Below, piece after piece: positions 477 through 55,374 of a DNA stretch of 64,000 nucleotides (its first letter is position 1; each line of letters opens with the position of its first letter). Both the position numbers and the translations under genes were made by a program. The stretch is from Ruditapes philippinarum (taxonomy: Eukaryota), in assembly GCF_026571515.1 (NCBI RefSeq), contig NW_026852009.1, forward strand, positions 1 to 64,000, read 5' to 3'. The notes below the pieces were generated by a model, which was given only the letters and a program-made list of their open reading frames with translations, made no database searches and had not been told where the DNA came from.

Positions 477-3400
477 ATGAGTTCTTCAATTGATCTTGAA
501 AGCGACAGAAGAGACCATTTTGAATTGTCATTATCGGGCAGCAAACAATTTAACAGAAGCAGTAAAACTATTTGTGCAATATGCTTGGACAAATACCAGA
601 AAAACCCAAAATATTTACAATGCTTGCATGCGTTCTGTGAACAACCATGCCTACAGCGTCTGCTTGACAGGTAGGTGCATTAAAGTAGCAAATATTTACT
701 TAAAGACATATGGTTATACCACACTGAAGATAACAAATAACATTTTATATCAGATATGTAACAGATAATAATATTCAGTTGCTTAAAAGATGCAATGCTG
801 TAAAACAGCTCCATCTTAAGGAGAGACATGAATGAAATATTGGATGAAACATTTAAAAAGAAGATAATAAAAGATGTGCCCGTATATCCATTTCATGAAT
901 AAATTGGTGTAATTATAGATTACTCTGAAAACTCTCAGATTGAGTAAAACGTTATTTATTAAGATTTCAATAGATAAATAAATTTTTGGTATATTATATT
1001 CCTCAACATATCAAGAAAGTGAATGGCGAACCTTTTTTATTCTAAAAAGGACTTTTTACAAAATATTTAATTACTTAAAATATATTCTAAATAAAGATAT
1101 ACCCCTTACGTATTTCAAAGTCCGACAGTGCTTGAAATGTAGTATAAACAGCTTTACCTCTTGTCATTGGGCTACAATTATCTGTTTTTCATATACATTT
1201 TTTTACATATTGCAGGATACACTTGTTTCTCAAAATTATATCCACTAACAGGTATTCATTTATAAATCCCTGAAGTGGAATAAAACGATGTGAAACTGAA
1301 ACCTGTCCATCCCGAATTGCATGTCCAACCATTGACTGCTGTCTCCGAGCTTTAAATGATAATGAAATATAATGCCAATTCTGCTAAATCACGCCCGTTT
1401 AACTCACAACGAGTGAAAAATGTCCATCGGTAAAAATGTTGTGAGCAACTTCCGTTCCTCGTTGTGAGCACCCATCTTTGACGTGTGACACGATAAACAA
1501 GGTGAGTTTTTCATAATTTTTGAAGATTACAGACATTTATGTAAAATATCGAAATGCAGTTAGCTAGCGATGTGTTTTCCGAGTATGCACATGTAAAGAT
1601 ATTGCCTGTTGGTGGACAATTTGATGGAAATACCGTGCGACGCAGTCACTCGGGGTAGCAGGAAAACTGGAGACAACTTCTCTTTGGACCTAATTTAACA
1701 TTGAAAACGTCGATTCTGGTGACGTTTTGTGCATTCTAACATAAAACAGATGCCCACAAGTCTTCAGCGTAAATTATTATCTGAAAGTCTTCATAGAAAC
1801 GAAGATATACCCTTTTTTGCTTTAATCCTCGTTGTGAGCACCATAACCTCGTTGTGAGCAAGACAAGCGCAGTGCTTGTCTGGTTTTAATATGTAATTCA
1901 AATGGCAAGAATAAAATTTTCAATCTACCAAAAGCAATCAAAACGTTTTTGTACAATAGTTTTTCTTTGCAATAGTTCTTCTTTTTCTTTTTTGAAAATT
2001 ATTCTTCATATTCACAAGTCATCAGATTAACAAAAGAATTAATCAGTGGATTTAATCTGCTATTTTATTTCATATACTCTAGTGTGGCACGAGTGAACAT
2101 CACGGGGAGTTTATGAATATTTCAATAATTTCACAATCTGTGTGATACACACATACATGTGTTTATCCTGAGCTGAAGACTGACCAAGTTTTGTTAAACA
2201 AGAACTATCACGGTAAGTTGACAATGCCCCCGAAGTGGTGCTTTGTCCTTTGATTTATGGACCAGATAGATTATTTGTTTTTGGACAATTAGATCTTCAA
2301 TGTGATGGTCATTCAAGGTCAACGTGAAATAAATATAGTTCAGTTTGAAGGTGTCTTGTCCAAAGGTGCATTGTGTCCAAATATAAATTAATTCCACTTA
2401 CTTAAAAGAAGTTATAACCAATGTTAAAGTTTTTGGATGTTCTAGAAGGTCATTCAGGGTACAAGGTAAAACAAATACAGATCAGTTTGAAGGTCTTGCC
2501 TAAAGGGGTGTTGTTTCAAAATGTGAGTAGAATCCGTATGCTAATAAGGAAGTTATGATCAATTTTTAAGTTTTTGGACAATTTGACCTTCAAGTAAAAG
2601 GTCATTCAGGGGTCAAGGTCAAAAGAATATAGGATAGCTGAGAGGCCTTGTCAAAAGATGTGTTGTGCCTAAACATTATGCCAGGACATTATGGCCAATC
2701 TTAAATGTTTTTGGACAATTTGACCTTCAAGGTAAAGGCCATTCAGGGGCCAAGGTAATAAAATACAGGTCCGTAGGAAGGTCTTGTCCTAAGGGATGTT
2801 GTGTTTAAATATGAATCAAATCCGTTTACTTATAAGGAAGTTATGGCCAATGTTAAATTTTTCAGACAGGTTGACGGACTGACAGACGGACAGTTTAAAA
2901 CTAATATGCCTCCCTTTGGGGTATGCACAACGTCTTGCAAAGAAATGCTGTTGTGCAAAAACGTTTTAATTGCTGTGGTAGATTGAAAATTATATTTTCA
3001 CCATCTAAATTACAAATTAAAACCATACATGCACTGCGCTTGTCTTGCTCACAACGAGGTTTTGGTGCTCACAACGAGGATTAAAGCAAAAAAGGGTATA
3101 TCTTTGTTTCTATGAAGACTTTCAGATAATAAATTACGCTGAAGACTTGTGGGCATCTGTTTTAGGTTAGAATGCACAAAACGTCACCAGAATCGACGTT
3201 TTCAATGTTAAATTAGGTCCAAAGAGAAGTTGTCTCCAGTTTTCCTGCTACCCCGAGTGACTGCGTCGCACGGTATTTCCATCAAATTGTCCACCAACAG
3301 GCAATATCTTTACATGTGCATACTCGGAAAACACATCGCTAGCTAACTGCATTTCGATATTTTTACATAAATGTCTGTAGTCTTCAAAATTATGAAAAAC

Positions 3401-5895
3401 TCACCTTGTTTATCGTGTCACACGTCAAAGATGGGTGCTCACAACGAGGAACGGAAGTTGCTCACAACATTTTTACCGATGGACATTTTTCACTCGTTGT
3501 GAGTTAAACGGGCGTGTAAATGTATAAAAAATTTAATTTTCGACAACCTGGATTACATAAGTAACTTAAGTAAGAGGTGTATGCCTATCAAAAATATTTC
3601 AGATCGGAGAACAACATCTTCAAGTGTCCCTTATGTCGACGAAGTTATAATGTGCTGACCTTTGAATGTGTAGCTTCCGAGTCTGATCCTCTGCTTGGCG
3701 AAAGAACAGAGCAAAGTACAGAGTGTAAGTAATTAGTTTCCTTTTTCACCATTGAATGTAACGAATATAGTTATACTTTTCATTACGTGTTTCAACAATG
3801 ATATGCGTATATTGGTTTTAGTGATACATTTTTTTGATTCACCAGTCAAGTTAAAAACTTTATAAAGAAGAACATTCACCATTTCTATAAGAACTGGGAC
3901 GAATTAATTTACACTACATTTACAGGGAACGCTATTGAAATGTTATAATATACTGAATAAGTATATAACAATTGATACAAGTCGTCTGATTTAATAATTC
4001 ACTTTAAATGAATTGTTTTCTTTTCCAGCGAATACATGTGAACGATTTTACACTTTAAGCGTTTTAGGTAAAGTATATTTATAGTTCGTAAGACAAAATT
4101 GCATCTATTTGATATGTATGTGAAATACTGCTGATTTTTATACATATTCTTAACATTATGCAGAAGAATACAATTATATCTATTCACACGTTTTCATATG
4201 TTATTATACCTTTATAACCTAACCCAACACTGCAGTACCTACGCTCCCTTCGCAGCTCACTGAATACACTCACGTTACTTAAGAAGTGAGCGATAGTGGA
4301 ACATTCGACCGATGCGCAGGAGAGTATGCAGTACCCTGCCCTACTGCCCTAGGCTACTTACCTACTTCCTACGGTACCAACACATAGCTGTGGATCTAAT
4401 CTATTTTTTTTATTTCAGTTGCTGTGTTTCATTTTTGCATCATTAGCGTTGCTAGGAATAGTATTAGGTAAATATACCAGAATTTTGATAAGCTTTCACA
4501 AACATTACATTATTCAATATTTATACGACAAATAAATTCCCCTTGCTGCGATTGGTCGAGACACAATCTCATTTATAACGAACATTGAAATGACATAAAG
4601 GTCGACTCGAAGTGATGTTCATCTAAATAGAGGGTATTGAATAAGTGAAGGATCAATAGAAAATTTATTTAACGAGTTGAATAGAATTATATTATCCCTA
4701 CTGGCGAGCTTAATATTATTTTATTTAACAAGTTTAATAAATTTCAGTAATGAATCTACACGGCTATAATATTTTAATGTATCACATACCCAAAAAGTGA
4801 AAAAGAAACATATTGCATTGAGACGCCTACAGTAAGCGCTCATTACGATATGTTTGTTAAACTCAAATCATGTGTAAATATATATTACCATTTTTACGGA
4901 GTCGCAAAAGCGGCAGGGGTATGTGACAAACAACTTTAAGTCATTAAGCGTGACAGAAAATTTTACCGTCCCTTCATATGATGACTTTACGATAAATAGG
5001 AACTAGGCAACTCTTCCTATTGTGATCAATTATTGTGGTGAAAGCTCGAAACTTCTTTGAAACCTTTAGAACTACCCAGCACTAGTGTCATATGAGGCAC
5101 GTAGGTATTGGCACTATAAGGAATCGAACCAACGATAAATATGTTGAAAAGCAGATATATTAACCACTTGGTCACAGTTTCCTTACGAATTGACAGTGTA
5201 ATTCAAAATCAACGGTAGTTCATGTAATTTTGTTGTTTAAATGCAAACGAAGCAGAAATTAATGCTCGGTGTATATAATGAAACACGATTACATTTGTAT
5301 CATTTTCTGTTATATGCAGGGTCTTATTTTCATGAATGTAAAGAGCTATTGTATGCTTATCAAATTGCGAAAGGGTTGATAGACATTTTCATTGCACTGT
5401 CATACTGCAAAAATCAAACAGGAGTATGCACTTCAATTCTGTTGGTCGTTTCAATCATTGGGCTTATATTAGGTAAGACATTATTTGATATTTGTAGTGT
5501 TAGGAATGTGTTACTGTCACCTCATAAAAATAAAAATAACCCTTCGTAATAATCTTTGTTTGAAATTTCTATGTTATTTTGACTTTTGTGTTTGGGAAGT
5601 GTACATACTATAAGTAAGTATACATTTATCATAAAAGTTTTGTTTTTGAATAACATAGAATTACTGAATGTTCCGAAGTATACATATTTCCAACAATAAG
5701 CAGAATACATCCATTTATATGACAAATAATTATGTTTCTTGTACAGGTACTATGGAAGCCTGGGAGACAACAGAAGACGACAGTCAATGTCAATTTCTAA
5801 TAGTATTTTCCCGCTATTACGTTGTTGCCGACGGCATTATGATCTTATTCATCTTCAGTTGTGCAGGATGTCGATCGGAAGACCTTTACGATTAA
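477..5895 (+). CDS. RING-4TM gene A: C3HC4 RING plus four-TM module; 6 coding exons; +1 frameshift in exon 4 as assembled (pseudogene or consensus error)
   Basis: Exons 477-670, 3603-3724, 4029-4067, 4419-4467, 5320-5472, 5747-5895, all GT-AG. RING CAIC-x12-CLH-x2-CEQPC-x14-CPLCR is split across exons 1-2. Exon 4 is 49 nt versus 48 nt in B, C and D (gctaGGaata vs gctaGaata). Exons 5-6 encode hydrophobic helices (YQIAKGLIDIFIALS; ILLVVSIIGLILG; FSRYYVVADGIMILFIF). Confidence 0.8.
1390..3516. mobile_element. Non-autonomous DNA transposon with about 580-bp TIRs (5'-CACGCCCGTTTAAC) and 5-bp TSD TAAAT, in intron 1 of gene A
   Basis: 1390-~1972 is the reverse complement of ~2935-3516. TAAAT flanks both ends (1385-1389, 3517-3521). 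The paralogous empty site in gene B has a single TAAAT (ttcttcTAAATgtata, ~30771). CTCGTTGTGAGCA is repeated within the TIRs. Confidence 0.92.
2197..2925 (+). mobile_element. pearl/Helentron-type non-autonomous element with four ~135-150 bp internal tandem repeats, nested in the TIR element
   Basis: Starts AACAAGA...ATGCCCCCGAAG. Four units begin tttttggacaatttgaccttcaa (~2277, 2430, 2571, 2709). These are followed by a GACA/GACG microsatellite (2865-2893) and a 3' hairpin-like atgcctccctttggggtat. Confidence 0.7.
5065..5178 (-). mobile_element. tRNA-derived SINE head (degenerate); also present in gene B at ~34395-34487
   Basis: The minus strand shows an A-box-like TGACCAAGTGG followed by the B-box GGTTCGATTCC. 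Confidence 0.5.
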
Positions 5896-7126: not shown

Positions 7127-7747
7127 GGATATATTATCGTGGATATACAACACCACTGCCTGTTTATCAAATTGCAATTGGAAGCCTAGACATTCTAATT
7201 GCAATGTCTTACAGCATCAGAAAGTATACGAAAGTTTATATTGTATTATTATTGCTGGCTATTTCGACATTGTGGCTTATATATGGTAAGATATTATTAG
7301 ATATTGTTATTGTAAGACTTGTTTCACTGTCATCTCTGTTATTAAAACTTTTCAGATCAAGCTTTGTTCGAAAATTATCAACTTATTTTGGCTTAATATT
7401 TCTATGGGAATTTTACATACTATGTATGCTTTAAACATCTTTTTAATGAAAATTTTGTGACATAAAAGTACTGAATGTCTAAGAAATTTACATATCATAT
7501 ACATTTAACAAAATATATTCACCATTACAACTGAAAATAACTTTGTTTTACAGGCACGAAGGAGGCATGGCAGAAAAACGACGACAGTCAATATCATTTT
7601 CTAACAGTATTTTTTCGCTATTATGTTGTTGCTGACGGCATAATGATCGTCATGATTTTCTGGCTTTTGGGATGTATGAGTGAACGAACAAGAAATATTC
7701 TTACCGAAAATGTAAACATGTCACATGCGTCAATGGATTATTCTTGA
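7127..7747 (+). CDS. Orphan two-exon paralogous TM cassette (equivalents of exons 5-6), open frame and intact splice sites; 5'-truncated paralog or alternative terminal exons
   Basis: Exon 7127-7285 (tgcag|...G|gtaag; GIYYRGYTTPLPVYQIAIGSLDILIAMS...LAISTLWLIYG) and exon 7554-7747 (tacag|; GTKEAWQKNDDSQYHFLTVFFRYYVVADGIMIVMIFWLLG...DYS*). Both begin in phase 1 like gene A exons 5-6. No RING exon was seen in 5896-7126. Confidence 0.7.
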
Positions 7748-7929
7748 TCATATAAATTATAAATGTTCAATATTCAGAAATCCTATTAGAGCATGTAGAT
7801 CAAACCTTTCTCAGAGACAGCCGTGAGATTTAAAAAAAAAACAATGAAAATATTTAATTTTGACTAAGATGTTTAATCTACTGAACATTTTTATTCATTA
7901 TAATAATAAAAATAGCATTTATTCAAAAG

Positions 7930-8370
7930 AGCCATTAAAATCGTTTAATCTAATTATAATTGAAATAAATAATTTATGATATAAAACATTATACAGAAGA
8001 GAATAAATGTTCCAGCCTAATCGATTTCGAAAAGGCTTTTGATTCTTTGCCTTGGGTTTGTGTAAATAAATCGTTGTCACTTTGTAAATTTGGATAAGAT
8101 AAGACTAAAGTAGTTTAGCGTTTTTTCTAAGATTAAAGATCGGATTTCAGCAAAATTTAGCAGATACAAAGTTTATTTTTTATATTTTATATGTCTAGGT
8201 ACAAGGCTAAGCCTTGTAAGGTTAAAAATGTTATGAAGTAAAAAACAAAAAAAAAACACAACCCCCCCAAAAAAAACCAATAAAAAAAACAATGCAGGAC
8301 TTTATATGCGCTTATAACTACATTAAAATGCTTTGGACAGGCGAATCACTATGAGCAATAGAAACTGTGC
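7930..8370 (+). mobile_element. Degraded L1/Tx1-like LINE reverse transcriptase fragment (duplicate at ~12440-12890)
   Basis: 8017-8095 translates LIDFEKAFDSLPWVCVNKSL. The duplicate reads HSGILLLTDFEKA. Both match the L1-clade RT motif xIDFEKAFDS.W. Confidence 0.55.
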
Positions 8371-11659: not shown

Positions 11660-12251
11660 ACCCGTGAAGCGAATTATTTTACACTACCATTTACAGGGAA
11701 CGCTATTGAAATATTATAATATACTGAATAAGTATAAAAATATCAATTGATACAAGGATCAACAAATTTCGACATTGTGGCTTATATATGGTAAGATATT
11801 ATTAGATCTTGTTATTGTAAGACTTGTTTCACTGTCATCTCTGTTATTAAAACTTTTCAGATCAAGCTTTGTTCGAAAATTATCAATTATTTTGGCTTAA
11901 TATTTCTATGGGAATTTTACATACTATGTATGCTTTAAACATCTTTTTAATGAAAATTTTGTGACATAAAAGTACTGAATGTCTAAGAAATTTAGAGATC
12001 ATATACATTTTACAAAATATATTCACCATTACAACTGAAAATAACTTTGTTTTACAGGCACGAAGGAGGCATGGCAGAAAAACGACGACAGTCAATATCA
12101 TTTTCTAACAGTATTTTTTCGCTATTATGTTGTTGCTGACGGCATAATGATCGTCATGATTTTCTGTTTTTTGGGATGTATGAGTGAACGAACAAGGAAT
12201 ATTCTTACCGAAAATGTAAACATGTCATATACGTCAATGGAGTATTCTTGA
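11660..12251 (+). pseudogene. Doubly deleted RING-4TM paralog: upstream region joined to an intron-2 fragment, then to the 3' end of exon 5 and an intact exon 6
   Basis: acaacccgtgaagcg (matches positions 1-16 and ~29186) is fused to an ~85-bp match of 3901-3981, then to atttcgacattgtggc (matches 7261). Terminal exon 12058-12251 is open. Confidence 0.78.
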
Positions 12252-22420: not shown

Positions 22421-22449
22421 TCTCAAAAATATCTTCCTTCTTTAAATAT

Positions 22450-32600: not shown

Positions 32601-35561
32601 GAAAATTTAGAAATTGCCGAAAAATTTACTTGTTTAGGAGTAGTCTTTACAACTTTTTCAGAAATAAATAACTCAACTAGAGCTCGTACATATGTAATAT
32701 TTGCAGATTTTAAATTTCAAAAGTACTTAAACTGTATTAATATTGAAAAATTTAGAATTCCTCTGTCCCGGCTAAGAGTTTCTTCACATAGATTCGAGAT
32801 TGAAACCGGCAGGTGGAATAAACCTAGTGCTATACCTTTTGATGATAGGAAATGTAAAAATTGTTTTATAATGGAAGATGAATTTCACTTTATTTTAGAA
32901 TGTTCTCTATATAATGAATTACGAAAATATATATAAAAAAACACTTTTGGGAAAGACCAAATATACCTAAAGTTGTTACATTGATGAATTCAGAAAATAG
33001 AAATAGAAATTAGAAACTTATCAATGCATATATTTAAAGCTTTCGATGTTCGAAACACTATTCTTTACAGTTAATCAAAAGTTTGTCCCAAACGCTGTAT
33101 CACTGTTTCTTACATACACTTATTTTCGTTTTGTTTTGTGATTTACCAGTATATGAATTGAGACATGTTGATAGTATATTCTATTTATAGTTAACGTTTT
33201 CTGATTGCTAAAAATACTGTGTAACTTAATGATATATGTTTTATTAAGTTGTGACATTGACCATTTGATTGTATTGTATGCTTTGTTATATGTACCGTGT
33301 ATGCATGGGCATATTGCCCAAATGTACTGTGAAATAAACTCTTGAAACTCTTGTATCAGCGTCGGATTAACTAATTCACTTTAAATGCATTGTTTTCTTT
33401 TCCAGCGAATACATGTGAACGATTTTACACTTTAAGCGTTTTAGGTAAAGTATATTTATAGTTCGTAAGACAAAATTGCATCTATTTGATATGTATGTGA
33501 AATACTGCTGATTTTTATACATATTCTTAACATTATGCAGAAGAATACAATTATATCTATTCACACGTTTTCATATGTTTTTTTTTTTGTAAATGTTATT
33601 ATACCTTTATAACCTAACCCAACACTGCAGTACCCTGCCCTGCCCTAGGCTACTTACCTACTTCCTACTGTACCAACCATATATAGCTGTGGATCTAATC
33701 TATTTTTTATTTTTATTTCAGTTGTAGTGTTTCACTTTTGCATCATTAGCGTTGCTAGAATAGTATTAGGTAAATATACCAGAATTTTGATAAGCTTCCA
33801 CAAACTTTACATTATTCAATATTTATACGACAAATAAATTCCCCTTGCTACGATTGGTCGAGACGCAATCTCATTTATAACGAACATAGACAATGACATA
33901 AAGGTCGACTCGAAGTGATGTTCATCTAAATAGAGGGTATTGAATGAGTGCAGGTTCAATACACAATTTATTGAACGAGTTGAATAAATTATATTATCCC
34001 TACTGGCGAGCTTGATATTATCTTATTTAACAAGTTTAATAAATTTCAGTAATGAATCTACACGACTATAATAATTATTTTCTGTATCACATACCCAAAT
34101 AGTGAAAAAGAATCATTTTGCATTGACGCGTCTACAGTGTAACGCTAAATTAAGCGCTTCTTTACGCTATGATTGTTTAACTCGATGACGTTATGTGTAA
34201 ATATATATTACCATTTTTAGGGAGTCGCAAAAGCGACAGGTGTTTGTGACAAACAGTTTTAAGTCATTAAGCGTGACTGAAATGTTTACCGTCCCTTCAT
34301 ATGATGGCTTTTCGATAAATAGGAACTAGGCGACTCTAGCTATTGTGATCAATTATTGTGGTGTAAGATCGAAATGTCTTTGAAACCTTTAGAACTACCC
34401 AGCACTAGTGTCATATGAGGCACGTGGATATGGAACTATAAGGAATCAAACCTACGATCAATATGTTGAAAACCACTTGGTCACAGTATCCTTACGAATT
34501 GATAATGTAATTCAAAATCAACGGCAGTTCATGTAATTTTGTTGTTTAAATGCCAACGAAGCAGAAATTAATGCTCGGTGTATGTAATAAAACACGATTA
34601 CATTTGTATCACTTTCTGTTATATGCAGGGTTATATTCTCATGAATGTAAAGAGCTATTGTATGCTTATCAAATTGCGAAAGGGTTGATAGACATTTTCA
34701 TTGCACTGTCATACTGCAAAAATCAAACAGGAGTATGCACTACAATTCTGTTGGGCGTTTCAATCATTGGGCTTATATTAGGTAAGACATTATTTGATAT
34801 TTGTAGTGTTAGGAATGTGTTACTGTCACCTCTTAAAAATAAAAATAACCCTTCGTTATAATCTTTGTTTGAACATTCTATGTTATTTTGACTTTTGTGT
34901 TTGGGAAGTGTACATACTATAAGTAAGTACGAGTATACTTTAAACTTATTTATCATGAAAGTACATACTATAAGTAAGAATACTTTAAACACATTTATCA
35001 TGAAAGAACATACTATAAGTAAGTATACTTTAAACACATTTATCATGAAAGTTTTGTTTTTGAATAACATAGAATTACTGAATGTTCCTGAAATATACAC
35101 ATTTCCAACAATAAGCAGAATACGTCCATTTATATGACAAATGAGCCGTGCCACGACAAAACCAACATAATGCGTTTGCGACCAGCATGGATCCAGACCA
35201 GCCTGCGCATCCGCGCAGTCTGATCAGGATCCATGCTGTTCGCTTACAAACTATATAACAAGTAGAGAAATTGATAGCGAACAGCATAGATCCTGATCAG
35301 ACTGCGCGGATGCGCAGGCTAGTCTGGATCTATGCTGGTCGCAAACCCATTATTTTGGTTTTGTCATGACGCGGTTCAAATAATTATGTTTCTTGTACAG
35401 GTACTATGGTAGCCTGGGAGACGACAGAAGACGACAGTGAATGTCATTTTCTAATAGTATTTTCCCGCTATTACGTTGTTGCCGACGGCATTTTGATCTT
35501 ATTCATCCTCATTTGCGGAAGACGATTAATCACAAAAATCTTGGATTTAATACGATGTTAA
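29665..35561 (+). CDS. RING-4TM gene B: intact 6-exon model, 252 aa, putative membrane-anchored E3 ubiquitin ligase
   Basis: Exons 29665-29858, 30871-31034, 33406-33444, 33722-33769, 34629-34781, 35401-35561 (759 nt, in frame, GT-AG). RING CAIC-x11-CLH-x2-CEQPC-x14-CPLCR. TMs: VVVFHFCIISVARIVLG, YQIAKGLIDIFIALS, TILLGVSIIGLILG, FSRYYVVADGILILFILIC. Confidence 0.85.
29901..30099. mobile_element. Palindromic MITE, GAG...CTC termini, 4-bp TSD ATAT (Sola-like signature)
   Basis: gagccgtgtcatgacaaaacc...ggttttgtcgtggcgcggctc, flanked by ATAT. The empty site in gene A is gacATATggtt (~707). Confidence 0.88.
32165..33353 (+). mobile_element. 5'-truncated, internally deleted non-LTR retrotransposon (RTE-X-like) in intron 2 of gene B
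   Basis: RT motifs GAPQGESLSP and LLYADDIV; C-terminal RLRVSSHRFEIETGRW...CKNC...EDEFHFILEC; ends AATAAA-CTCTTGAAACTCTTG; absent from gene A. Confidence 0.85.
34910..35052. repeat. Three ~45-bp tandem repeats in intron 5 of gene B (single unit in gene A)
   Basis: acatactataagtaag...tactttaaac..atttatcatgaaag repeated three times. Confidence 0.8.
35143..35377. mobile_element. Palindromic MITE of the same family as 29901-30099, 4-bp TSD AAAT
   Basis: About 105-bp inverted arms; AAAT on both sides. The empty site in gene A is gacAAATaattatg (~5724). Confidence 0.9.
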
Positions 35562-38942: not shown

Positions 38943-38944
38943 AA

Positions 38945-38992
<48 letters not shown>
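38943..38992. repeat. (AAT)n microsatellite
   Basis: Direct reading. Confidence 0.9.
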
Positions 38993-38994
<2 letters not shown>

Positions 38995-39501: not shown

Positions 39502-39532
<31 letters not shown>

Positions 39533-40750: not shown

Positions 40751-43700
40751 TCAGTCGTCTTTAACTAAACAGTACATGTATAGAGTTATGCAGAATATCA
40801 TCAGCCAGTCCACTATTATATACCATCCAAGGAAGTCTCCAAAAAAACATTCTGTCCATATGAAATGCGTACCTAAAATAGATTGATCTAATTATATGTT
40901 ATGTAATTATTTTGATTCAACTATTATGATACAATTTATTTGAGATTTTTTTTATTATTAGCTCAGCTATATTAATAAGGAACATATCTCTGTTTACAAG
41001 AAAGAATTAAAGTAACTGAATGATAAGCAGTCACACTGCTGCACGTGTCGTAATTTGAATAACTTAAAACTATAATGACCCTCAAACCTTACTAGGGAAT
41101 GTTATATTACATACAGAGGACATGATCAAATAACCACAAGGTGTTAGAAAAACATCCCCATTTCGTTTACAACAAAGCAAGGGCCAAACTAATGGAACTG
41201 GTGAATTTAAAATAAAACAAAGAACGCAATTAATTTCATGCTTTCCAGTGTTTTACTGTTATACATCAGATGATTGTATTCTGATAAACCACAAGTGAAA
41301 TTTATAAGATATAATTTCACTGTAGCATAACTATATCTGAATGCGGGTGAAAATAATATCATAACTAAATGGAATAACAGGCAAAAATAAATGCCGTCAT
41401 GCGTAAATTTTGCTTATACAGAAAATGAAAGTCGATGTCACCATAAATCATTTTAAAATGTAACGACATTAGAGAAATTTAACAGAACTATATTTCAAAA
41501 TTGATGATGTGACGCCATGATGTGATGACATCATAAAGGAGAATGCGCGACGTTACTCGGTAAAATCATTGAACAATACTTAGAAGCATCACTTATAAAG
41601 CATGTAATTAAAAGAAAATTTATTTGTTTTGCATATTAGATTGATATATATTTCATTCGTGAACACCAGCTATTCTATTGTCACTCGTGGCTATGCCACT
41701 CGTGAAAATTACGCATCTGGTGTTCACTCAGTGAAATATATTTCAATCTAACATGCAAAACAAAACATATCGTGTATGTAGAACAACGACATACCAAAAC
41801 CCGTCACTATAACTGAAGCCAGTATTAGAACCAAGAAAAGATATTTACGATAACGACATTTCACATTTCGCCAAAGAGTTATTGCAATAATGAAATCAGA
41901 TGCTCCTTTAAGCATTTGAGAAATGACACAACCGTTCCATGTGCTTGTGAAAGGACCAGAAAATAAACCTGTGGTAAAAAAGAATACACAATAGGATAGT
42001 GGAACACACATAAAAGTAACAACATAAACCGATGTCCTATCACACTTTTAATGTAATGTTCATTTCAATAAGTCAAAGTTTGAGGAGGCAGATATCACGA
42101 AGGCAGATAAATATGTTTGCATAACAAAATAACTGTGTATGCGAATTAAAGTTCTGAGGATTCTGTGTAAAGTTTCTGGTTAATTAATTTAGATAAGCTA
42201 TTCTATACGGTCTAATCATTTATATTAAAAAGAAATGAAAAGATATTTCCTAAAGATTACTAGATTTTTCATCTATTATTAACAATAACGTCATATTCTT
42301 ACCTAAAAGAACTCTTGCAATAGCAACTAAGATTAAATGCAACATACAAACTGAAAACATAAAAAAGTGACTTTGTAGTAATAACAGCATGTATCTTTAA
42401 GAGAACAAAACCTCTGATACCCCCTACGATTCAATTGTGCAGCTAAGAACTATATTAATGGATATCTTGCGATGTTTTTAGTTTTTGTTTCAAATACTGT
42501 CTATTACTCTGAGAATTATAGTTTAACCATGATAGTGAAAATTAAGACATTTTAGATGTTGAGTCAAACAGGATAGAGTTTCTGCTCAGATACAACTTGA
42601 CGTTGGTAAATCATATTGTATTATTAGCCAGCCCGCAATGCTAAATCGGTTAGAACGCGAGACTTTATGGGTCCGATTCCAAGACTGGCCAACTAAAATT
42701 ACTTAATTAGTCTTTCGGATGAGACTTCCGAGTATGAGTGATTAATTACTTGGCACGTTGAAGAACCAGTAGAAGCTTTTGGAATGTGGGCATCTTTCTG
42801 TATCTGTATCCTTCACTATCCTCTAAAATATATAATGACTAATACTCTACTTGAGGACCCATCTATATGGACAACCGGTGGCAAGTACAAATAATCTCAA
42901 ATACACACACGTGACAAAACATTCGTTTGGCTGCATGACCCTGTGATTAGTCTATCGGACTAGTCATCTAAGGATTGCTTTCCGCATTAGTTCAAACCCC
43001 GTCACGGACAAGTCGTTGTTTCCGCGAGCAAGAAACTTTACACATGTTGCTTAGTACTGACTGATTACAGGACTTGAGGGGGTTTCAATAAGCTTATACC
43101 TTCTAATTTTTGGAGGGAGTTTGCATCGCACCAACACATTCTTCGAACTAAAATGAATTAGAACTAAATTTTTCTTTCAGAAGAGCACCAATAAATGTTA
43201 TATTATATACACCATTAACGAATACACTTATATAAATTTGAAAAAAGTTAAAATTCTCGCTTCTTGTGCTATGAACAACAAAGACACAGTAAATAAAATA
43301 AAAATACAGAACATAAATATTTTAAACAAAACAAATGCGAAATTTCACCACATGAACAGTTACTTTTACAGCATAAATATAAGATTATACAATATAAGTA
43401 TGCTTTATATCACATAAAAATATTTTTAGAATTTTGCAACGTTCCACACACCATAGATTACGTGGTACTTATATTATGTACCTTTCTATCAATATCTATT
43501 TTTTTTATTATGTAGTAACTTATTTACCTCCAAATGCCGCGGCTTTAATACACGACCGACAACAGACACATTCTGAAAAATGTAAATATAGCATAAATGT
43601 TGAAAAAGTATTTGATATATGCGTGTAACTGTCAATTCCTACGATTCAATATAACGGTCTTGGACAAATAAGTGACTCTATTTTCATTAATATTTTGATA

Positions 43701-45486
43701 AAATATTTACTCACATTGCACTGTAGCAACATATATAAGCTGATCACAAACTTAGCTCACGCGTAAACTGTTTATGTTGAAATGCACAAGGTAGTAGATA
43801 CAGCAAACTACTATATTGCAGGCTATATGTTGTATTTGTACATCCATTTTTAATAAAGCTTTACTCTTTAATTGTAATTAATAGCCGAAGTTATTGTCAT
43901 TATCTTGGTCGTATATGAAGACGTAAACGTCGTAGTCGAAATGGTCATGGTTGTAGTCTTGATCATGGGTCATGTATGTAGTCGTAGTTTGGACGAAACA
44001 ATCTTACAGTNNNNNNNNNNNNNNNNNNNNNNNNNNNNNNNNNNNNNNNNNNNNNNNNNNNNNNNNNNNNNNNNNNNNNNNNNNNNNNNNNNNNNNNNNN
44101 NNNNNNNNNNNNNNNNNNNNNNNNNNNNNNNNNNNNNNNNNNNAACGTAGGGTTATGCCTAAGAAATGATTAATTTTTAATTTCTTATGAATTACCTGAT
44201 TTGTTATAAGAATACGTTTGTGGTCTCTGATTGATTGCTGGGCCATTATTGCTCCTGAAATAGATTGTGTATCCTTTAAGATTTACCATTTTTCACCCTC
44301 ACGTTTTATAAACATTATTCATTTGCTTAGAAATTGCAAAGTCTTTTTTTATCAAACATTCGGTTTTCCGGATTTCATTTATAATAACGAACTAGAGCAC
44401 TTTAGATAAATTGCAGCACTTTTGTTAATTATACGTGTACGTTTAATTTTCAACAGTGCTGATACGTGATAGATGTTTTCAAATTATTACAAAATAAACA
44501 TAGGATTTGCGTGATTATACTATTTATGTGGCCATCCTAAAAACAAATGAACTGAAAACAATACCGTAATTTATCACTAATTTAGTATGCTCTGTATTCT
44601 AATCATGCACAAGTCGATGTTATATTCTTATTAAATGTGAAACAACATAAAACTTGCAATCATCTTTACATAGTTTTAAAGCAAGATTAATTTTCATACA
44701 ACAAAATAAAAAAAATGTATAATTTATCATTCTACTTTGTAATAAAATTTCTGATTTAAATCCTTGCAGAACACAACATTACCTGATCACTCGGTCAGCC
44801 AAACGTCTATCTCCTGCAGCTTCAACTCTTTCTGAAATAGTTGTTAAAATCCCTTGACTTGAGAAAGATGTTTCTGCATAGTGATTATTTTGTTCTCCGT
44901 ATTGTCGAGTTTTCACTGGAGCAAATGTATCAACGTAGTACTCTTTTCGACACAAGGGACATTTGAAAGTGTTTCCCTCTGAACTGAATTATTGTTAAAC
45001 AATATCATTATTGCATACCAGTAGTTGAAATTATATTCAAAAATTTACATATAAGATATCATTTTTCTGAACATTATACTTATAATTATACCAACTGACA
45101 ACAGAACCATAATAGTTATAGTCAATCGAAGTCGTCGGCGTAGAAGTATAACATCAACAAAAATGTATGCATATTACGAGTTTAACAAAACTTTACTAAT
45201 GTATATTAAACGTTTGAAACTTATACCTATCAGAAAATACACATGTTTATATATATAATCATACACAATTACATTTAGTTGGTTATTTGTGTGTTTTTGT
45301 TCAATTAAAGACGTTATAACTTAAATTATACCATTTGATCAAGTCTTGAAGACATGGTTCACATATCATGTGAATACATGGAAGGAACCTGGTTCGTATT
45401 TCGCGTTCACGACAAACAGGGCACAACTCCTTGTCGGTTTCTACATCGTTAGGGACAGGCAACTGAATTCTGATCTCCGAACTCAT
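40751..45486 (-). CDS. RING-4TM gene C: intact 7-exon model, 267 aa
   Basis: Exons (minus strand) 45486-45332, 44983-44783, 44254-44196, 43572-43528, 42350-42303, 41968-41795, 40872-40751 (804 nt, in frame, GT-AG). RING CPVC-x11-CIH-x2-CEPC-x14-CPLCR. TMs: VCMLHLILVAIARVLLG, SQMLKGASDFIIAITL, LFLVLILASVIVTGFG, FLGWYIIVDWLMIFCITLY. An N-gap lies in intron 3. Confidence 0.85.
41620..41765. repeat. Inverted-repeat element end (possibly Crypton-type non-autonomous)
   Basis: ttgttttgcatattagattga...gtgaacaccag and ctggtgttcac...tcaatctaacatgcaaaacaa flank cactcgtggctatgccactcgtg. Confidence 0.5.
42625..42910 (+). mobile_element. tRNA-headed SINE with V-domain-like core
   Basis: A/B-box-like head (gctaaatcggttagaacg...ggtccgattcc), core gtctttcggatgagac and ggcacgttgaagaacc, (CA)n tail; absent from gene D. 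Confidence 0.55.
42940..43100 (+). mobile_element. CORE-type SINE remnant; paralogous copy at ~51090-51240
   Basis: gttcaaacccc...gttgtttccgcgagcaagaaactttacacatgttgcttagtactg resembles the CORE domain; same intron position in C and D. Confidence 0.5.
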
Positions 45487-46340: not shown

Positions 46341-46360
46341 AGTCTATATGATACACCAAG

Positions 46361-47648
46361 CGAAATATTAATTCGTTTTTACGAAATATTATTTCGTAAT
46401 TACGAAATATTAATTCGTAATTAAGAAATATTATTTCGTAATAACGAAATATTATTTCGTAATTACGTAATATTAATTCGTAAAAACGAAATGTTATTTC
46501 GTAATTACGAAAAAATAATTCGTAAATACGAAATAATCTTTCGTAAAAAAGAATTAATTTTTTTCTAGTGTTTCAAAGAGTTTTGATAAAAGTTATAAAT
46601 AAGGCCTTAAAACTAAGTTTCGGCATGTTAATGCAATATAAATAGTGCCTTTTGTTTTCCCCAAGCTTTTTAACTTAACACTATTGTATATTAATTAAAA
46701 TAATCGCCTGTCATTGAGCCAGAGCCGTGATAGTACACGCGCTAGGAAAATTTAGTTAAAAAGGGGGTACTGTGCTTCAAATCCAAAAACGGACATTTAT
46801 TTTCTGTTTCATTTTGTCGAAATTATTGAGTTTTGAAATAAATTATTATGTTTTTATGATCATACGGTGCCCATACATAAATTGTAAGGAAATATTCTAA
46901 ATTGATTAGATTAGTGAAACACTTGAGCACCCCCTCGCCCCTTTAGTTTAACTAATGTTAGAGTATATGATAAAAGAAAGGAATAATATAGCAAGTTTCT
47001 GTTTTAAAGAAACATGTCATAAAAGATTAATTGCCTCAAACATTAAAACATTGTTGATAGGAACATGTATTTGACAATTGGGAAAAAGAAACCATTTTGG
47101 ATAGAGAATGACTTCTCACTCAAAAAACTCTGTTCATTTAAATTTAATAACTTGAGAACCATTCGGCTTATAATCGCAAGGTTGATCAAGGCTTGTAAAT
47201 GACCCATTTGTGAGATTAGTAGGTTGTTTGTCAAGCTCACAATAACCTTAAATAAGAGTTCGTAAAACTGAATTAATATTTCGTAATTACGAAATAATAT
47301 TTCGTAATTACGAAATAATAATTACGAAATAACATTTCATAAAAACGAATTAATGTTTCGTAAATATGAATTAATATTTCGTAAAAACGAATTATTATTT
47401 CGTAAAAACAAATTATTATTTCGTTATTACGAAATAACATTTCGTTTTTACGAATTAATATTTCGTAATTACGAAATAATATTTCGAAATTACGAAATAA
47501 TATTTCGCAAAAACGAATTAGTATGTCGTAAATACGAATTAATATTTCGTAAAAACGAATTAACATTTCGTAAAAACGAATTAATATTTCGTAAAAACGA
47601 ATTAAATGCCAGGGGAAAAGTGTCAAGAATGTCACCTTAGGGGCTCCG
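46361..47648. mobile_element. Foldback-type non-autonomous DNA element with inverted arrays of a 21-bp near-palindromic repeat; left terminus deleted
   Basis: acgaaatattatttcgtaatt-type units at 46361-46550 and, inverted, at 47260-47605. The right end is ...gtcaccttaggggctccg followed by TA. Confidence 0.75.
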
Positions 47649-47679
47649 TACGTTCGAAACCTGATGTTTTACGATACAG

Positions 47680-47813
47680 ATATGAGTATAAAATACTTTC
47701 AAATGCCCTATGTCCACAAGAGTACTACGTTGATACGTTTGCTCCTGTAAAAATCGTAAAGATAAACAGCAAAGTAATCACACTACAAAGCATCTTCCTC
47801 AAGTCCAGGGAAT
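47680..47813 (+). pseudogene. Decayed plus-strand copy of RING-4TM exon 2, head-to-head with gene C
   Basis: aatactttcaaatgccctatgtccacaagagtactacgttgatacgtttgctcctgtaaaa matches gene C exon 2 (NTFKCP...EYYVDTFAPVK) with a frameshift, then catcttcctcaagtccaggg. Confidence 0.75.
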
Positions 47814-49895: not shown

Positions 49896-52800
49896 TCAAT
49901 TTTGGTTTATAAAGAACAACACATACATGTACCAAAAACTGCAAAATATCATCAACCAGTCCACTATCGTATACCAGGCCATAATTATTCGAATAAAATC
50001 TGTCCATATTAAATACGAACCTAAAAAAGATAAATCGAATTATATGTTATATGATTATTTTGACTCTGCATATTTTCATAATTCAACACTTTGCTCAGCT
50101 ACATAGTATTTAACAAATTTCTTTTCATAAACAAAGATGATATATCGTTATTAAATTAATGAAAAACTATAACGACTTTCAAACGTTAATGGGTATTATT
50201 ATATTGCTTATTAAGGAAATAATAACACCTCCCCATTCCCTTCCCCATTTCCCCTTTCATTAAAATGAAAGGATCAAACAACTGAACTCGTGTATTTAAA
50301 ACTTAAAAAAGAACACAAGATAGAACACTGACATACATGTACCAAAACCCATCACTATAACTGAAGCCAGTATCAGAACCCAAAAAAGATATTTACGATA
50401 ACGACATGTCACATCTCGCCGAAGTGTTATTGCAATAATTATATCTGTTAGGCCTTTAAGCGTATGAAAAATGCCAACACCTTTCCAATGGTCCCAGGCG
50501 GAAATAATTATTAGAATCAAACCTGTCGTAGAAAAAACACAACAATAGACCATAACATAGAAGAACACACAAAGATTACAACATAAACCGATGTCCTGCC
50601 ACACGTTTAATGTAATGTACATATCACTTAATCAAAGTTTGAGAAGACATGTATCACGGAAGCGTTTTTGTTTGCTTGCATAACATGATTACTGTGTTTG
50701 CAAATTACTAAATAACTAAAGGCACAATGTCGTTATTAGATTAAAGCGTTAACACATTAACTCTTTCAAATTAAATTGATTACTGTTTTATAGATAATCT
50801 TTACATAATTTAGTTTATTTTAAATTTCTAAAATTTGTTCTTTTTAGGTTACTTGATTATTCAACCAGTAACATCATATACGTTACCTGCAAAAAGTCTT
50901 ACAATTGCCACTAAGTTTAAATGCAACATAAGAACTGAAAACATAATTAAATGTTACATTCTAGCATTAAAACATGTATCAATTGAAATAGACCAAAACC
51001 TAACGATTCTATTATACAGCTGGGAACTACATAAACATTTTTTTTACATGTTACATATTTAAACATTTTAAAATTTTCAAATACTGGCTAGTGGTGAGCC
51101 CATATGACTAGTAATCTAAGGATCGCTTACCGCGTGCGTTGAAACTCCGTCAGGGGCAATAGCAAGAAACTTGACACTCATTGCTTAGTATTGGCTGGTT
51201 CAAGGAAAGCATTTCAATCGTTTCAATCAGCTTATAGCTTCTAATATTTTACTTGGGATTTATGTTACAACAACACAAAAACAATTAAACTAAATCAAAT
51301 TACAACAAACTATTTTTTCTTTTAAAAGGGCAGCAATAGATGCAATGATATAAACCATAAACAAATACACTTATATAATGTGAAAATAGTTAAACTTTAC
51401 TCTGTTCAACAAAATTAAATATTTACACCTATCCGTTAATGACACTCATGGTGTAGAAATAAATAATAATAATAATCGTCATTCATGCTTCAACATCATT
51501 ATAGTGTTTGCTTTCATGATTATTTCATTTGATACTGATTGTGTCATTAAAATGATACTGGTTATATAATTTTCCATTCTATATATATTTTATTGATTAT
51601 GTTAATAATTGTTTTACCTCCAAATGCCATTGTTTTTATACACGATCGACAACAGACACATTCTGTAAAACGTAAATACCATAAATATTTGATAAATGTG
51701 TGTAGCTAACAATGTCCGTTTTAATTAAACTGACTTAGGAACGAAAATGAGTATTGATTCAAATATTAAGAAATATTAAAGTCTCTTTCATTTATATTTT
51801 CATGAAATATTTACCCGCATTGCACTGTTGCATCATCATTTTTNNNNNNNNNNNNNNNNNNNNNNNNNNNNNNNNNNNNNNNNNNNNNNNNNNNNNNNNN
51901 NNNNNNNNNNNNNNNNNNNNNNNNNNNNNNNNNNNNNNNNNNNNNNNNNNNNNNNNNNNNNNNNNNNNNNNNNNNNNNNNNNNNNNNNNNNNNNNNNNNN
52001 NNNNNNNNNNNNNNNNNNNNNNNNNNNNNNNNNNNNNNNNNNNNNNNNNNNNNAATTACTTGCAATCATATTCAGGACCATAACAAAAGGCTATTGTTCG
52101 ATAACGAAATAGCTATTTTGTCTGCAGTCTTAATATCATGTAGGGATGTTAGTGATGAAAACCAAATAACACCTATTGTGGTATTGATGGTCTTACTAAT
52201 AAATATAAATTATGAAGATTTTTTCAAAGTCGTGGTAATAGTCGTTATCGTACTGCTCATGGTTGTAGAAGATGTCATTGTCAAGATCGTGGTGGTGGTC
52301 GTAGACATAAAATCAAATGCTTTGTCTCAGTTTTGGTTGTAGTCTTATATCAACTTTGGTCAAATAAAACATAAAGTTGGTTGTTGTTAATGTAAAAATA
52401 GTTCTTCTCGTAGTCATATAATTGTAAGAGGTCGTAATCCTTTTTAGAAAAAGTTGTAATCTTCATTGTTGTTTTAACATTTTTCATTTATCTGTTTATG
52501 ATTTCGGTCCGGATTTTTTGGCCTTGAATATAGTCGTAGTCTGAAGGAAACACTGTCGGTTATTCTACAAGAATACTTCAAATGCATATACGATTTAACG
52601 ACAAGATGCATTTAGAGTGATTTGTATACTGTGTTACGAACAACGTTTAAAGTGTACGCGTATTGTAACAGATATAACCTTTTGCCTATTTAGCGGTATA
52701 CGGTGCAACATTAAAGGTCTCTAAAGCTGTATACTGTGTTACGGTCAACGTTAAAAGTTAATACGTATTGTAACCTATCTGCGCAGTAGGCTGTTTACGG

Positions 52801-55374
52801 GTCAGAAAATGTACAGTGCTAAACAGCTTATGCCTAGTGTATCATACATACGGATTAAGCTGTAAACGGTGCACTATTTAAGGTCTGTAAAGCTATATTC
52901 AGTGTTACGATCTACGTTAAAAGTTTGTGTGTATTGTAGAAATGGTCATAGATTTAAAAGAGTAGGTCAAAGTCGAGTTGATCGTGGTAGTCGTACAAAT
53001 TAAAAACGTGGGTTCAGTGTTGGTCGTAGTCTCATTTAGTCATGGAAATCATAATATTGGCTGTCGTGTTAGTAGAAAGAGTTCGTCTAGCAGGCATGAC
53101 ACTTTTAAAGGTCATAATTATATTTAGTGACACTACATGCTCAGTTAGCTGTAACGGTGCAAAATAATTTGTGATTTATTCATTAAAATTATTTATTTTC
53201 AATCACATATTAATTACCTGATTCGTTATTGTAAAAGACATGTGTTTGCGGTCTCTGGTTGATTCTTGAGTCTCTGAAATAGGTTGTGTATCTTTTCAAA
53301 ATTTTATCCATTTTTACCCAGACGTGTTATATTTCTTTTTGCTTACAAATTGCATAGTTTTGATATCAATGCCTGGCCCCTTGTTCACAAAGAAAAGATC
53401 AGGATCATTGTTTTATAAAACTTAAATTGATCATATTGTGCAAGAATTGAATGGTACATATTCAAAATGTAAAAGAAATGCTGATTTGTAAAGAAAAAAC
53501 ATATTTTTGGATAAAATCAATGAATAACAAAACAAATACAAAAATAATCTAATAAAAATAAAGATCAACTTTAGGATCAAGATCAATATTTGGATCAACT
53601 GTAAAATGTTTATTTCTTGTAAAATAACAATAAATTTTTTGTTAAATTTCAAGTCAAGTTTTATAAAGTTAATATTTAATATTTAATATATTATAATAAG
53701 GAAAATCATTGGATAATATTTGAGTTTATATTCAACTGATCTTGATCCTGATCCTTAAATCTTAAAGACGTGGCCTCGGTGTCCGCAAATTTATTTACGT
53801 TCCGAAACATAAAACTTAAGATAATTACGACACGTTTTTATTTTTGTCAATTATACATGTACTTACAATGTTAAACAGTGCAGTGCGAAAGATGTTTTTT
53901 AAATGTTAACATAATCAAAATAGGAGATACGAGTTCATACCGTTTTGTGGTCATCCTAAAAACAAAATGAACTGAAAAAACAACATAATACATTACTTAT
54001 TCAAATAAGTAATACAAAACACATGTAAAACATAACTGTACCTGATCACTCGGTAACCCAACTCCCTATCTTCTGTGCTTTGAACTCTTTCTGAAATAGT
54101 TGGTAAATTCCCTTGACTTGAGAAAGATGTTTCCGCAGTTTGTCTGTATTGTCGACTTCCCACATGAGCAAATGCATCAGAGGGGTACACTTTTCGACAT
54201 ATGGGACATTTGAAAGTATTTTCCTCCGAGCTGCATTATTGTTAAAGAATATACCATTACATATATAAACATTTTCATATCAAAGCATTTTTAATAAGAT
54301 GTTTGTGACGACTTTGTAAGATTTGTTCGTATATCATCACCCGTCACCTTATGCGTGTTATGATATTTATTTATTTATTAAGTCTATGGTTTATAAATAT
54401 AAACAAATATATATTTTGCTAGTTTCATGTTAAAAGGAAAAATACCTTATTTAAGCATTTATATATTAAGATAATGAATAAATTGTATCCATTAGCTGAA
54501 AAATTAAACAACTTTTGGTGATATAGTTACTAAAAATCTTTGCTGTCTACGTAAAGGGTTATAGTTGGATTTATAAATCTGTTATTTGTAAAAAATTGTT
54601 TTGTCATCATGAATATTGCTTTACGCCTAGCAAGAAATTATAGTCAAAATTATCAACGTCCTCAAACTCCTTAACCTCTGATTTTCCAGATTCAGTATAG
54701 ATCATCGACGGTAAACGAAACCTGATTATAACCATGGCAATTGATAACAGGCCAAGTTCATTCTGATAATACCAGTATAACACAATAACATAGGAACATT
54801 TTTGCCCTTGTATTAAGTCTAACTTTGAAATGAATGTATATGATGACAATAAAATAGGCCCTACCGAGTTTTTGGTCGAGGGTGTAGTGGCCGTTATCAC
54901 ATTCGTTTAACTAGAGAACGTGTTCCTTGTTGAATTTAATTTAGAATTCATGGGCGTTGTTATAGTCTAAATCTTAGTATTGGGCGTAAAAGTATACCAT
55001 ATTACTAAATAGCATCAACAAAATTGCAAATTACGAATTAAACAAAACATAGGTAATGCATATCAAACATTTGATATTAACTTTAACCTATCGGAAAAAA
55101 ATACATGGATATTCATATTATATAAAACATTTCATATTTGTTAGTAAATTAAATGATAATACTGTTAATAATAGTGTATTCGTTCAGTTAAGGCAGTAAT
55201 GAATTCATACCTTGTGATCAATTTCTGCAGACATGGATCACATATCACGTGAATACATGGAAGAAACCTGGGTGGTATTCCACTTTCAAGACAAACAGGG
55301 CAAGACGCTTTGTTGTTGGTGGCGTCGTTAGGACTTGGCAAATGAGTATGAAGCGCACTGTTCTCCAAACGCAT
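49896..55374 (-). CDS. RING-4TM gene D: intact 7-exon model, 268 aa
   Basis: Exons (minus strand) 55374-55211, 54230-54042, 53273-53218, 51662-51618, 50934-50887, 50522-50343, 50020-49896 (807 nt, in frame, GT-AG). RING CPVC-x11-CIH-x2-CDPC-x14-CPICR. TMs: VLMLHLNLVAIVRLFAG, FHTLKGLTDIIIAITL, LFWVLILASVIVMGFG, IMAWYTIVDWLMIFCSFWY. An N-gap lies in intron 3. Confidence 0.85.
52620..52940. repeat. Three imperfect tandem copies of a gtgttacg..caacgtt.aaag...gtattgta motif
   Basis: Copies at ~52625, 52729 and 52894. Confidence 0.6.

Follow-up and report, generated by a model that had tools for sequence, protein, structure and literature searches.

A tandem family of predicted membrane-anchored RING ligases with a four-helix module, apparently restricted to the Manila clam

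What kind of protein is encoded by a series of short, tandemly repeated RING and transmembrane (TM) exons in the genome of the Manila clam, Ruditapes philippinarum? The exons lie in the first 64 kb (hereafter the window) of contig C496 (88,283 bp), part of a 1.41-Gb assembly, and the gene cluster that they form is real and transcribed. Most probably, the cluster represents a tandem, clam-restricted family of predicted membrane-anchored RING E3 ubiquitin ligases with a four-helix module. The predicted protein of ~240-270 amino acids (aa) would comprise an N-terminal TRIM2/3-like C3HC4 RING, a short and mostly disordered linker, and a C-terminal four-helix membrane module.

A six-frame scan of the window, which has a G+C content of 31%, recovered N-terminal RING halves (C-x2-C ... 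C-x-H-x2-C) at exactly four places and C-terminal halves (F-x-C-P-x-C-R) at another four, all where an earlier reading of the sequence alone (the sequence-only reading) had placed them. The halves pair up into genes A and B on the plus strand and genes C and D on the minus strand. Self-comparison at the DNA level showed A and B to be 79-96% identical, including introns, and C and D to be 67-78% identical in blocks; because the genes fell into these two pairs, the remaining exons were sought by comparing C with D and A/B with C/D. The resulting models have canonical AG/GT at every exon boundary and frames that are open in B (6 exons, 252 aa), C (7 exons, 267 aa), and D (7 exons, 268 aa). Two runs of N in the window (44011-44143 and 51844-52053) were left unfilled and no letters were inserted. 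The spliced models of A-D were used locally only, for translation, hydropathy, and ratios of nonsynonymous to synonymous divergence (dN/dS), while queries for database searches and folding were single exons or database proteins identical or nearly identical to the models (P0001, which is paralog E; P0012, an isoform of C; P0017, close to B). Much of the architecture proposed by the sequence-only reading is borne out, including the four genes and an orphan cassette, a phase-2 RING intron with GT/AG in all four genes, and TM1, TM2-TM3, and TM4 exons that are all joined in phase 1. The TM1 exon has the proposed 48 nucleotides (nt) in B, C, and D, but 49 nt in A, and two clear relics were found instead of three. 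The exon inventory was also incomplete, in that A and B carry one extra 39-nt phase-1 exon and C and D two extra small exons (one of 56-59 nt and a Cys-rich one of 45 nt).

Transcript mapping covered gene C only (40100-46000) and drew on Logan contigs from two runs of different studies (X1 and X2), as well as on raw RNA-seq runs X21 and X23. Exon 1 of gene C (45332..45486, minus strand) is coding from an ATG that corresponds by homology to the start codons of D, E, and I, and exon 2 (44783..44983) supplies the C-terminal RING half and the linker, with the RING motif at 45423-45352 in the first exon and 44967-44947 in the second. These are followed by exon 3 (44196..44254; 59 nt), exon 4 (43528..43572; 45 nt), which encodes a Cys-rich juxtamembrane motif (C-V-C-C-R-S-C), and the TM1 (42303..42350; 48 nt), TM2-TM3 (41795..41968), and TM4 (40751..40872, stop included) exons. 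All six predicted junctions (44983/45332, 44253/44782, 43572/44196, 42350/43528, 41966/42301, and 40869/41792) are present in contigs of both X1 and X2, with CT..AC on the plus strand equivalent to GT..AG for the gene. A single 474-nt contig runs from RING exon 2 through all of the small exons to the TM4 exon, and a 519-nt contig joins the two RING exons; transcripts of gene C thus connect its RING exons to its TM exons, as the sequence-only reading had anticipated. The first assembly gap (44011..44143) is intronic, in intron 3 of gene C, because spliced contigs of both runs join 43572 to 44196 and skip 623 bases that include it. Though X1 and X2 were labelled RNA by guess, their contigs can be taken as cDNA because the spliced forms show exact exon ends. 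A genome search found no intronless copy, and every TM2-TM3 match lay in a short open frame kilobases away from a RING exon. With respect to the start of the gene, RefSeq isoform X2 begins at an upstream ATG (45630), while the matching part of an X1 contig ends at ~45538-45540, beside a pyrimidine tract and AG, leaving 172 letters beyond it unplaced. This suggests an upstream 5' exon, likely of 5' untranslated sequence, with an acceptor at ~45538, and since the contig appears to splice into exon 1 at this site the ATG at 45486 is the likelier start.

Gene D has the same exon order on the minus strand. Its exon 1 (55211..55374) is preceded by an in-frame stop two codons 5' of the ATG, the RING motif falls at 55302-55231 in exon 1 and 54214-54194 in exon 2 (54042..54230), and exon 3 (53218..53273; 56 nt) is included in the RefSeq protein P0015. 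The second gap (51844..52053) lies between exons 3 and 4 and is placed in intron 3 because P0015 joins these exons by a junction homologous to the transcript-confirmed one of gene C. Exon 4 (51618..51662; 45 nt) is again Cys-rich, the TM1 (50887..50934; 48 nt) and TM2-TM3 (50343..50522) exons are absent from the RefSeq model, and the TM4 exon (49896..50020) includes the stop. Gene B, on the plus strand, begins with an exon carrying the start codon and the N-terminal RING half (29665..29858), which alone matches the Pfam model zf-C3HC4 at 30.3 bits. Exon 2 (30871..31034) encodes the C-terminal half and a linker of T-E-Q-R repeats, so that the motif occupies 29764-29835 and 30887-30907. The 39-nt exon 3 (33406..33444; phase 1 to 1) is also found in P0017, and is followed by a 48-nt TM1 exon (33722..33769; phase 1 to 1) with an invariant His and Arg, a TM2-TM3 exon (34629..34781) with an invariant K-G-x-x-D, and a TM4 exon that includes the stop (35401..35561).

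Gene A is a broken relative of B. Exon 1 (477..670, plus strand), with the start codon and the N-terminal RING half (C-x2-C ... C-x-H-x2-C-x3-C), agrees with RefSeq P0018 (LOC132746514), and exon 2 (3603..3724) contributes the C-terminal half (C-P-L-C-R) and an acidic linker; the motif positions are 573-647 and 3619-3639. Exon 3 (4029..4067; 39 nt, phase 1) encodes S-N-T-C-E-R-F-Y-T-L-S-V-L. The 49-nt TM1 exon (4419..4467), in which P0018 ends, has a 1-nt insertion relative to B and to a near-identical copy of A elsewhere in the genome (L008), and this shifts the frame into stops. The TM2-TM3 (5320..5472) and TM4 (5747..5895) exons of gene A are of the B type and open in their own frames, the former being out of frame downstream of the TM1 shift. 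Behind gene A stands the orphan cassette, of a second type, consisting of an open TM2-TM3 exon with AG/GT ends (7127..7285, plus strand) and an open TM4 exon with a stop codon (7554..7747), which are 94 and 92% identical, respectively, to their counterparts in LOC132748069. In that intact gene, on contig C5384, A-like RING exons directly precede an orphan-type cassette. No TM1 exon that would belong to this cassette could be identified in the window, and exon phases forbid the 49-nt TM1 exon of gene A from feeding it.

The RING is the best recognized part of the protein. In all four genes the GT donor follows the second base of a codon in exon 1, and exon 2 begins after a pyrimidine tract and AG. 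The eight zinc ligands, in the order C-C-C-H-C-C-C-C, are all present in A, B, C, D, E, and I, with the spacing C-x2-C-x11-C-x-H-x2-C-x2-C-x15-C-x2-C in the C/D type, and a Pro precedes Cys7. Pfam gathering thresholds are passed by P0001 (zf-C3HC4_3, 35.5 bits against a cut-off of 27) and P0011 (zf-C3HC4, 35.5 bits against 21), and RING exon 1 alone is already sufficient. Among solved structures the best sequence match is the RING of TRIM2 (E 8e-9, 38% identity), a match that also takes in a Pro-Ser-Pro stretch ahead of the first Cys; TRIM32, TRIM56, and TRIM3 come next. In a Foldseek search of the PDB the RING alone was matched, and TRIM2 was again best. The RING is accordingly of the TRIM type, as had been proposed from its motif, and Arg follows the last Cys, the linchpin position, in every copy. 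With its zinc ligands and linchpin Arg intact, the RING would be expected to recruit a ubiquitin-charged conjugating enzyme (E2~ubiquitin).

Likeness to TRIM2 and TRIM3 covers the sequence and fold of the RING, the Pro-Ser-Pro flank, the C-P-x-C-R ending, and the Arg at the linchpin position. Unlike these proteins, the clam proteins have a RING split by a phase-2 intron and, in place of the B-box, coiled coil, filamin, and NHL parts (Pfam returned RING models only), a polytopic membrane module. No B-box or other non-RING domain was found in Pfam at E up to 1, and the AlphaFold2 model of P0001 separates the RING from the TM module by no more than a single short helix (101-118); with neither B-box nor coiled coil, the clam proteins do not qualify as TRIM proteins strictly defined. 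Elsewhere in the genome, many contigs contain long single-exon open frames (300-900 aa), dozens in all, that match the RING portion of the family profile. These fit a large TRIM-like expansion in the clam, from which the RING of the family probably derives.

Four TM segments had been proposed for the C-terminal part, and four are predicted: in B, C, and D alike, Kyte-Doolittle hydropathy peaks four times, at homologous positions, and AlphaFold2 models helices at 148-180, 185-206, 212-237, and 243-271 of P0001 (pLDDT, the per-residue confidence, 65-79) while leaving the linker disordered. The TM2-TM3 loop is rich in Arg and Lys in the C/D type, and since this fits a cytosolic side by the positive-inside rule, it supports a four-span topology with the N-terminus inside. 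Both termini and the RING would then face the cytosol. The C/D-type linker ends in the Cys-rich juxtamembrane motif, which is probably S-acylated. Loops between the helices are 5-14 residues long, and there is no large extracellular loop. In an alignment of eight proteins from both subfamilies, which are ~25% identical in the TM region, TM1 has an invariant His and Arg, TM2 an invariant Lys-Gly-x-x-Asp, TM3 Leu/Ser/Gly, and TM4 Tyr-x3-Asp. The two positive and two negative conserved intrahelical charges point to buried salt bridges or to a polar site for recognition. The bundle, in which buried His/Arg, Lys/Asp, and Asp residues are invariant, would anchor the enzyme in the membrane and probably select membrane-protein substrates or partners. 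Blastp of A/B-type against C/D-type TM exons gave a single match beyond the RING, in the TM1 exon (E 0.001); homology of the two types of module is accepted because they have exon phases and aligned invariant residues in common.

Does the module occur elsewhere? In Pfam, nothing beyond RING models was matched by single TM exons or, at E up to 1, by P0001, P0011, and P0016. A profile built from eight TM2-TM3 exons and run exhaustively with HMMER against 1.84 billion representative proteins gave ten matches, none of them genuine outside this clam: six are clam proteins or fragments, and the other four (P0005, P0007, P0008, and P0010) are internally repetitive, match only short parts of the profile, and were rejected as false positives. 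Word-based searches likewise found no non-clam relatives of the proteins. Within the genome the TM-part profile matches only C496, C5384, and C11579, and no RING-less parent of the module was seen. These results agree with the lineage specificity put forward by the sequence-only reading. Fragments of the TM2-TM3 exon also occur on short JGI contigs of 1.5-3.7 kb (P0002, P0003, and P0019), and P0003 is unlike any copy in the assembly; these may be clam DNA in environmental samples, or may come from a further allele or a related species.

Structural comparison led no further. In the VIA search the TM module superposed at Z 10-12, over 115-130 residues, on bundles of the MS4A/CD20, sarcospan, and tetraspanin kinds (PRPH2, Fc epsilon RI beta, sarcospan, uroplakin, and CD20), with no Pfam match to CD20 or tetraspanin. 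Soluble and designed four-helix bundles score equally, and Z below ~13 is rated as background for helical bundles, so the resemblance is to four-helix bundles in general. Neighbors in the ESM Atlas are headed by an MS4A cluster, with scores (0.83-0.89) at chance level and no consistent family.

A bolder reading, offered as a tentative possibility, is that the four-helix module arose only recently, as an orphan membrane domain, and was captured in the Ruditapes lineage by a TRIM2/3-type RING exon pair. Its His/Arg/Lys/Asp network would recognize TM segments of substrates, and its phase-1 exons would diversify or switch topology and specificity, yielding a new, fast-evolving polytopic RING ligase with a plausible role in host defense. 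The exon modularity that this supposes would be seen in skipping of the TM2-TM3 exon (described below) and in the two interchangeable cassette types that stand in tandem behind gene A.

The more general reading, of a family of predicted membrane-anchored ligases, has to be weighed against how its copies have evolved. About eight copies are intact (B, C, D, E, I, LOC132748069, LOC132748062, and G, which has a three-residue insertion in the RING) and about four are decayed, namely A, the A-like L008 (stops or frameshifts in both cassettes), and F and H (parts lost). The genes on contig C5384 stand in the same order as on C496, with an A-like copy that matches A at 96% identity over 3 kb, and for this reason some apparent paralogs may be divergent haplotypes. 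For pairs drawn from C, D, E, and I, dN/dS is 0.6-0.85 whichever region is compared, at synonymous divergence (dS) of 0.18-0.45. Among segments, the RING is the most conserved (identity 0.84) and the first exoplasmic loop the least (0.29), in keeping with the divergent luminal loops that had been predicted. Birth-and-death evolution, also predicted, fits the mixture of intact and decayed copies on three contigs and the dN/dS range, and the cluster appears to be a young, fast-turning tandem family restricted to R. philippinarum. In two further places, L004 (C11579:172501-182000) and L002 (C496:81501-88283), a degenerate RING exon 2 with stops accompanies an intact TM module, and RefSeq models the modules there as TM-only proteins (P0006, 120 aa, and P0016, 169 aa). 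This pairing of a broken RING with an intact module means that the module may persist or be expressed without a RING.

Such a history could also be that of young, weakly expressed duplicates drifting to loss, which are spliced yet have no selected ligase or membrane function and whose frames are open because they are recent. The dN/dS values, the broken copies, low RNA depth, and the failure to detect orthologs elsewhere would all be expected of them. As a rough estimate, however, neutral evolution at a dS of 0.25-0.45 should have left several stops per 800-nt frame, whereas open frames are retained in B, C, D, E, I, LOC132748069, and LOC132748062, and every indel between C and D is a multiple of three. 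The intact frames and frame-keeping indels at such divergence argue for some coding constraint. The contrast in identity between RING and loops, and the invariance of five polar intramembrane residues across subfamilies so far diverged, also speak against drift, which is regarded as unlikely.

A further alternative concerns which product matters. Alternative use of the phase-1 TM2-TM3 exon of gene C yields four-, three-, and two-TM isoforms: one contig of run X2 joins 40869 to 42300, so that the TM2-TM3 exon is skipped and the TM4 exon follows TM1 directly and in frame, and RefSeq isoform X2 of gene C (P0012) uses an internal GTAAAT donor in the same exon that removes TM3. The family may thus act mainly through shorter functional products (a two-TM hairpin, a three-TM form, or a soluble RING-only protein), with the TM2-TM3 exon as a regulated cassette and the four-TM form as a minor one. 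The RefSeq model of paralog G (P0013) makes the same skip, those of D (P0015) and H (P0014) are RING-only, and TM exons that all run from phase 1 to phase 1 leave any subset in frame. On the other side, X1 and X2 both contain the complete form with six junctions, at a depth of 8-12, against 4.2 in one contig for the skipped form, and the TM2-TM3 exon contains invariant residues and is open in all intact copies. The truncation of D may itself be an annotation artifact, because P0015 reads on into the intron after exon 4. The evidence as a whole makes this alternative quite unlikely.

Are the clam proteins related to a membrane ligase that is already known? None of the 49 human transmembrane RING proteins is known to pair a TRIM-like RING with a four-helix module. 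BFAR combines a RING with a SAM domain and a multi-pass TM region; the clam proteins have no SAM match in Pfam and amount to only ~250-270 aa. MARCH5, or MITOL, is similar to the clam proteins in size. It has an N-terminal, cytosol-exposed RING followed by four TM domains (PMC4897099), but its finger is a RING-CH (C4HC3) and not C3HC4, the clam proteins have no RINGv match in Pfam, the TM parts lack sequence similarity, and MARCH5 is conserved across animals whereas the clam family is not. The RNF183 family (RNF183, RNF186, RNF182, and RNF152) consists of small proteins with an N-terminal C3HC4 RING and predicted C-terminal TMs (PMC7313026), numbering one or two against the four predicted helices of the clam, although the exon-skipped clam isoform also has two. 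Pfam and database searches, which included no direct alignment with RNF182 or RNF186, detected nothing alike outside the RING for this family and gave no vertebrate matches. A review of human transmembrane RING proteins discusses RNF170, RNF182, and BAR (PMC4021871).

It is highly improbable that the clam proteins are very diverged members of a known RING-TM family (RNF183/186/182/152, BFAR-like, or MARCH5-like) and not a separate invention: the layout of the RNF183 family at ~200-270 aa (PMC7313026), the exactly two TMs of the exon-skipped isoform, the four TMs of MARCH5 behind an N-terminal RING (PMC4897099), and the speed with which short TM segments lose sequence signal could be cited for it, but P0001, P0011, and P0016 give RING models only, neither exhaustive profile nor word-based searches yield a non-clam match, the finger is C3HC4, no SAM domain was found, and the RING is nearest to TRIM2/3/32/56, among solved structures that include no listed RNF183-family RING. 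As judged by sequence, the clam family does not belong with MARCH5 and appears not to belong to the RNF183 group, and Pfam, profile, and word-based searches found no full-length relative in any characterized RING-TM family. The sequence-only reading went too far, however, in speaking of a new class, as ligases with an N-terminal RING and C-terminal TMs are known, including the RNF183 family and the four-TM MARCH5. The clam family is better described as a lineage-restricted new layout of predicted membrane-anchored RING ligase than as a categorically new system.

Several observations weigh against the interpretation as four-TM membrane-anchored ligases. Ligase activity, topology, and membrane insertion are all predictions, as is the immune or restriction role hinted at by the sequence-only reading, and the A/B-type RINGs are unusual in their C4-x3-C5 spacing. 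On its own, TM2 is of marginal hydrophobicity (1.4-1.5 on the Kyte-Doolittle scale, with an approximate Hessa sum of +6 to +7 from approximate scale values), and the AlphaFold2 model is of low confidence (mean pLDDT 56.7; pTM, the predicted global fold score, 0.38), having been built from an 11-row, single-species alignment. Splicing is demonstrated for gene C alone, and the principal products may be isoforms with a skipped exon. Expression is low: the depth of the contigs is 8-14, and because the two deep raw runs X21 and X23 gave few reads on gene C exons, and no junctions at the listing threshold, it is taken to be low in those samples. Finally, the dN/dS values are high, so that constraint is weak.

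The surroundings of the genes appear to have been reshaped by duplication and insertion. The relic of a second orphan-type TM4 exon (12058..12251, plus strand) lies inside a tandem duplication (7261-10532 / 11766-15071) in which only the last bases of the accompanying TM2-TM3 exon were duplicated. A pair of 830-bp direct repeats (15067-15896 and 27397-28226; 98.8% identity) brackets ~11.5 kb in which reverse transcriptase, RNase H, and integrase domains are encoded on the minus strand in three separate open reading frames (17002-20152). The segment 15067-28226 looks like a recently inserted long terminal repeat retrotransposon, located in the second copy of the duplication because duplicated sequence picks up again at 28229. 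In intron 1 of gene A, inverted repeats of ~580 bp, 96% identical (1390-1972 and 2935-3516), surround ~960 bp and are missing from B and L008; they are probably the insertion of a foldback or terminal inverted repeat element. Between C and D, a frameshifted relic of a C/D-type RING exon 2 lies on the opposite strand (47692..47755, plus). Beside it in the C-D intergenic region are arrays of a 21-bp AT-rich tandem repeat (~9 and ~17 copies) at 46361-46546 and 47259-47605, in both orientations. Within introns of gene C, 41085-41872 and 42661-43054 have very high RNA coverage in runs X21 and X23 (hundreds to thousands), with nearly all reads running into unlike sequence; this coverage comes from transcribed dispersed repeats that do not belong to the gene.

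The sequence-only reading had called the family hidden, which applies to some of its members. P0001 (LOC132746524, 272 aa) is identical to an independently built model of paralog E, which lies just past the end of the window, and P0012 (LOC132746564) follows gene C exon by exon; these two genes, LOC132748069, and LOC132748062 are already modelled with TM modules. Gene D, by contrast, is represented by a "TRIM2-like" protein of 169 aa (P0015) that ends after exon 4, and gene A by one of 135 aa (P0018) that ends at the frameshift. P0017 (LOC132748062, on C5384) is identical to the B model at 234 of 252 aligned positions (93%), and no protein with the TM module of gene B itself was found in database searches. 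The family is therefore annotated in part, always as uncharacterized or TRIM-like, with D and A, and probably B, incompletely modelled.

Membrane-embedded RING ligases govern the turnover of receptors, channels, and organelle proteins, and the known repertoire comes almost wholly from conserved families. The clam genes flag gaps in annotation, with D and A truncated and no TM-bearing model of B found, and their practical impact will be limited until activity, location, and targets are measured. In this clam a RING from the bivalve TRIM expansion would have been joined, in one lineage, to a membrane domain without a detectable ancestor. The family may thus offer a natural case in which to follow the origin of new membrane domains and the evolution of E3 substrate specificity through modularity at the level of exons.

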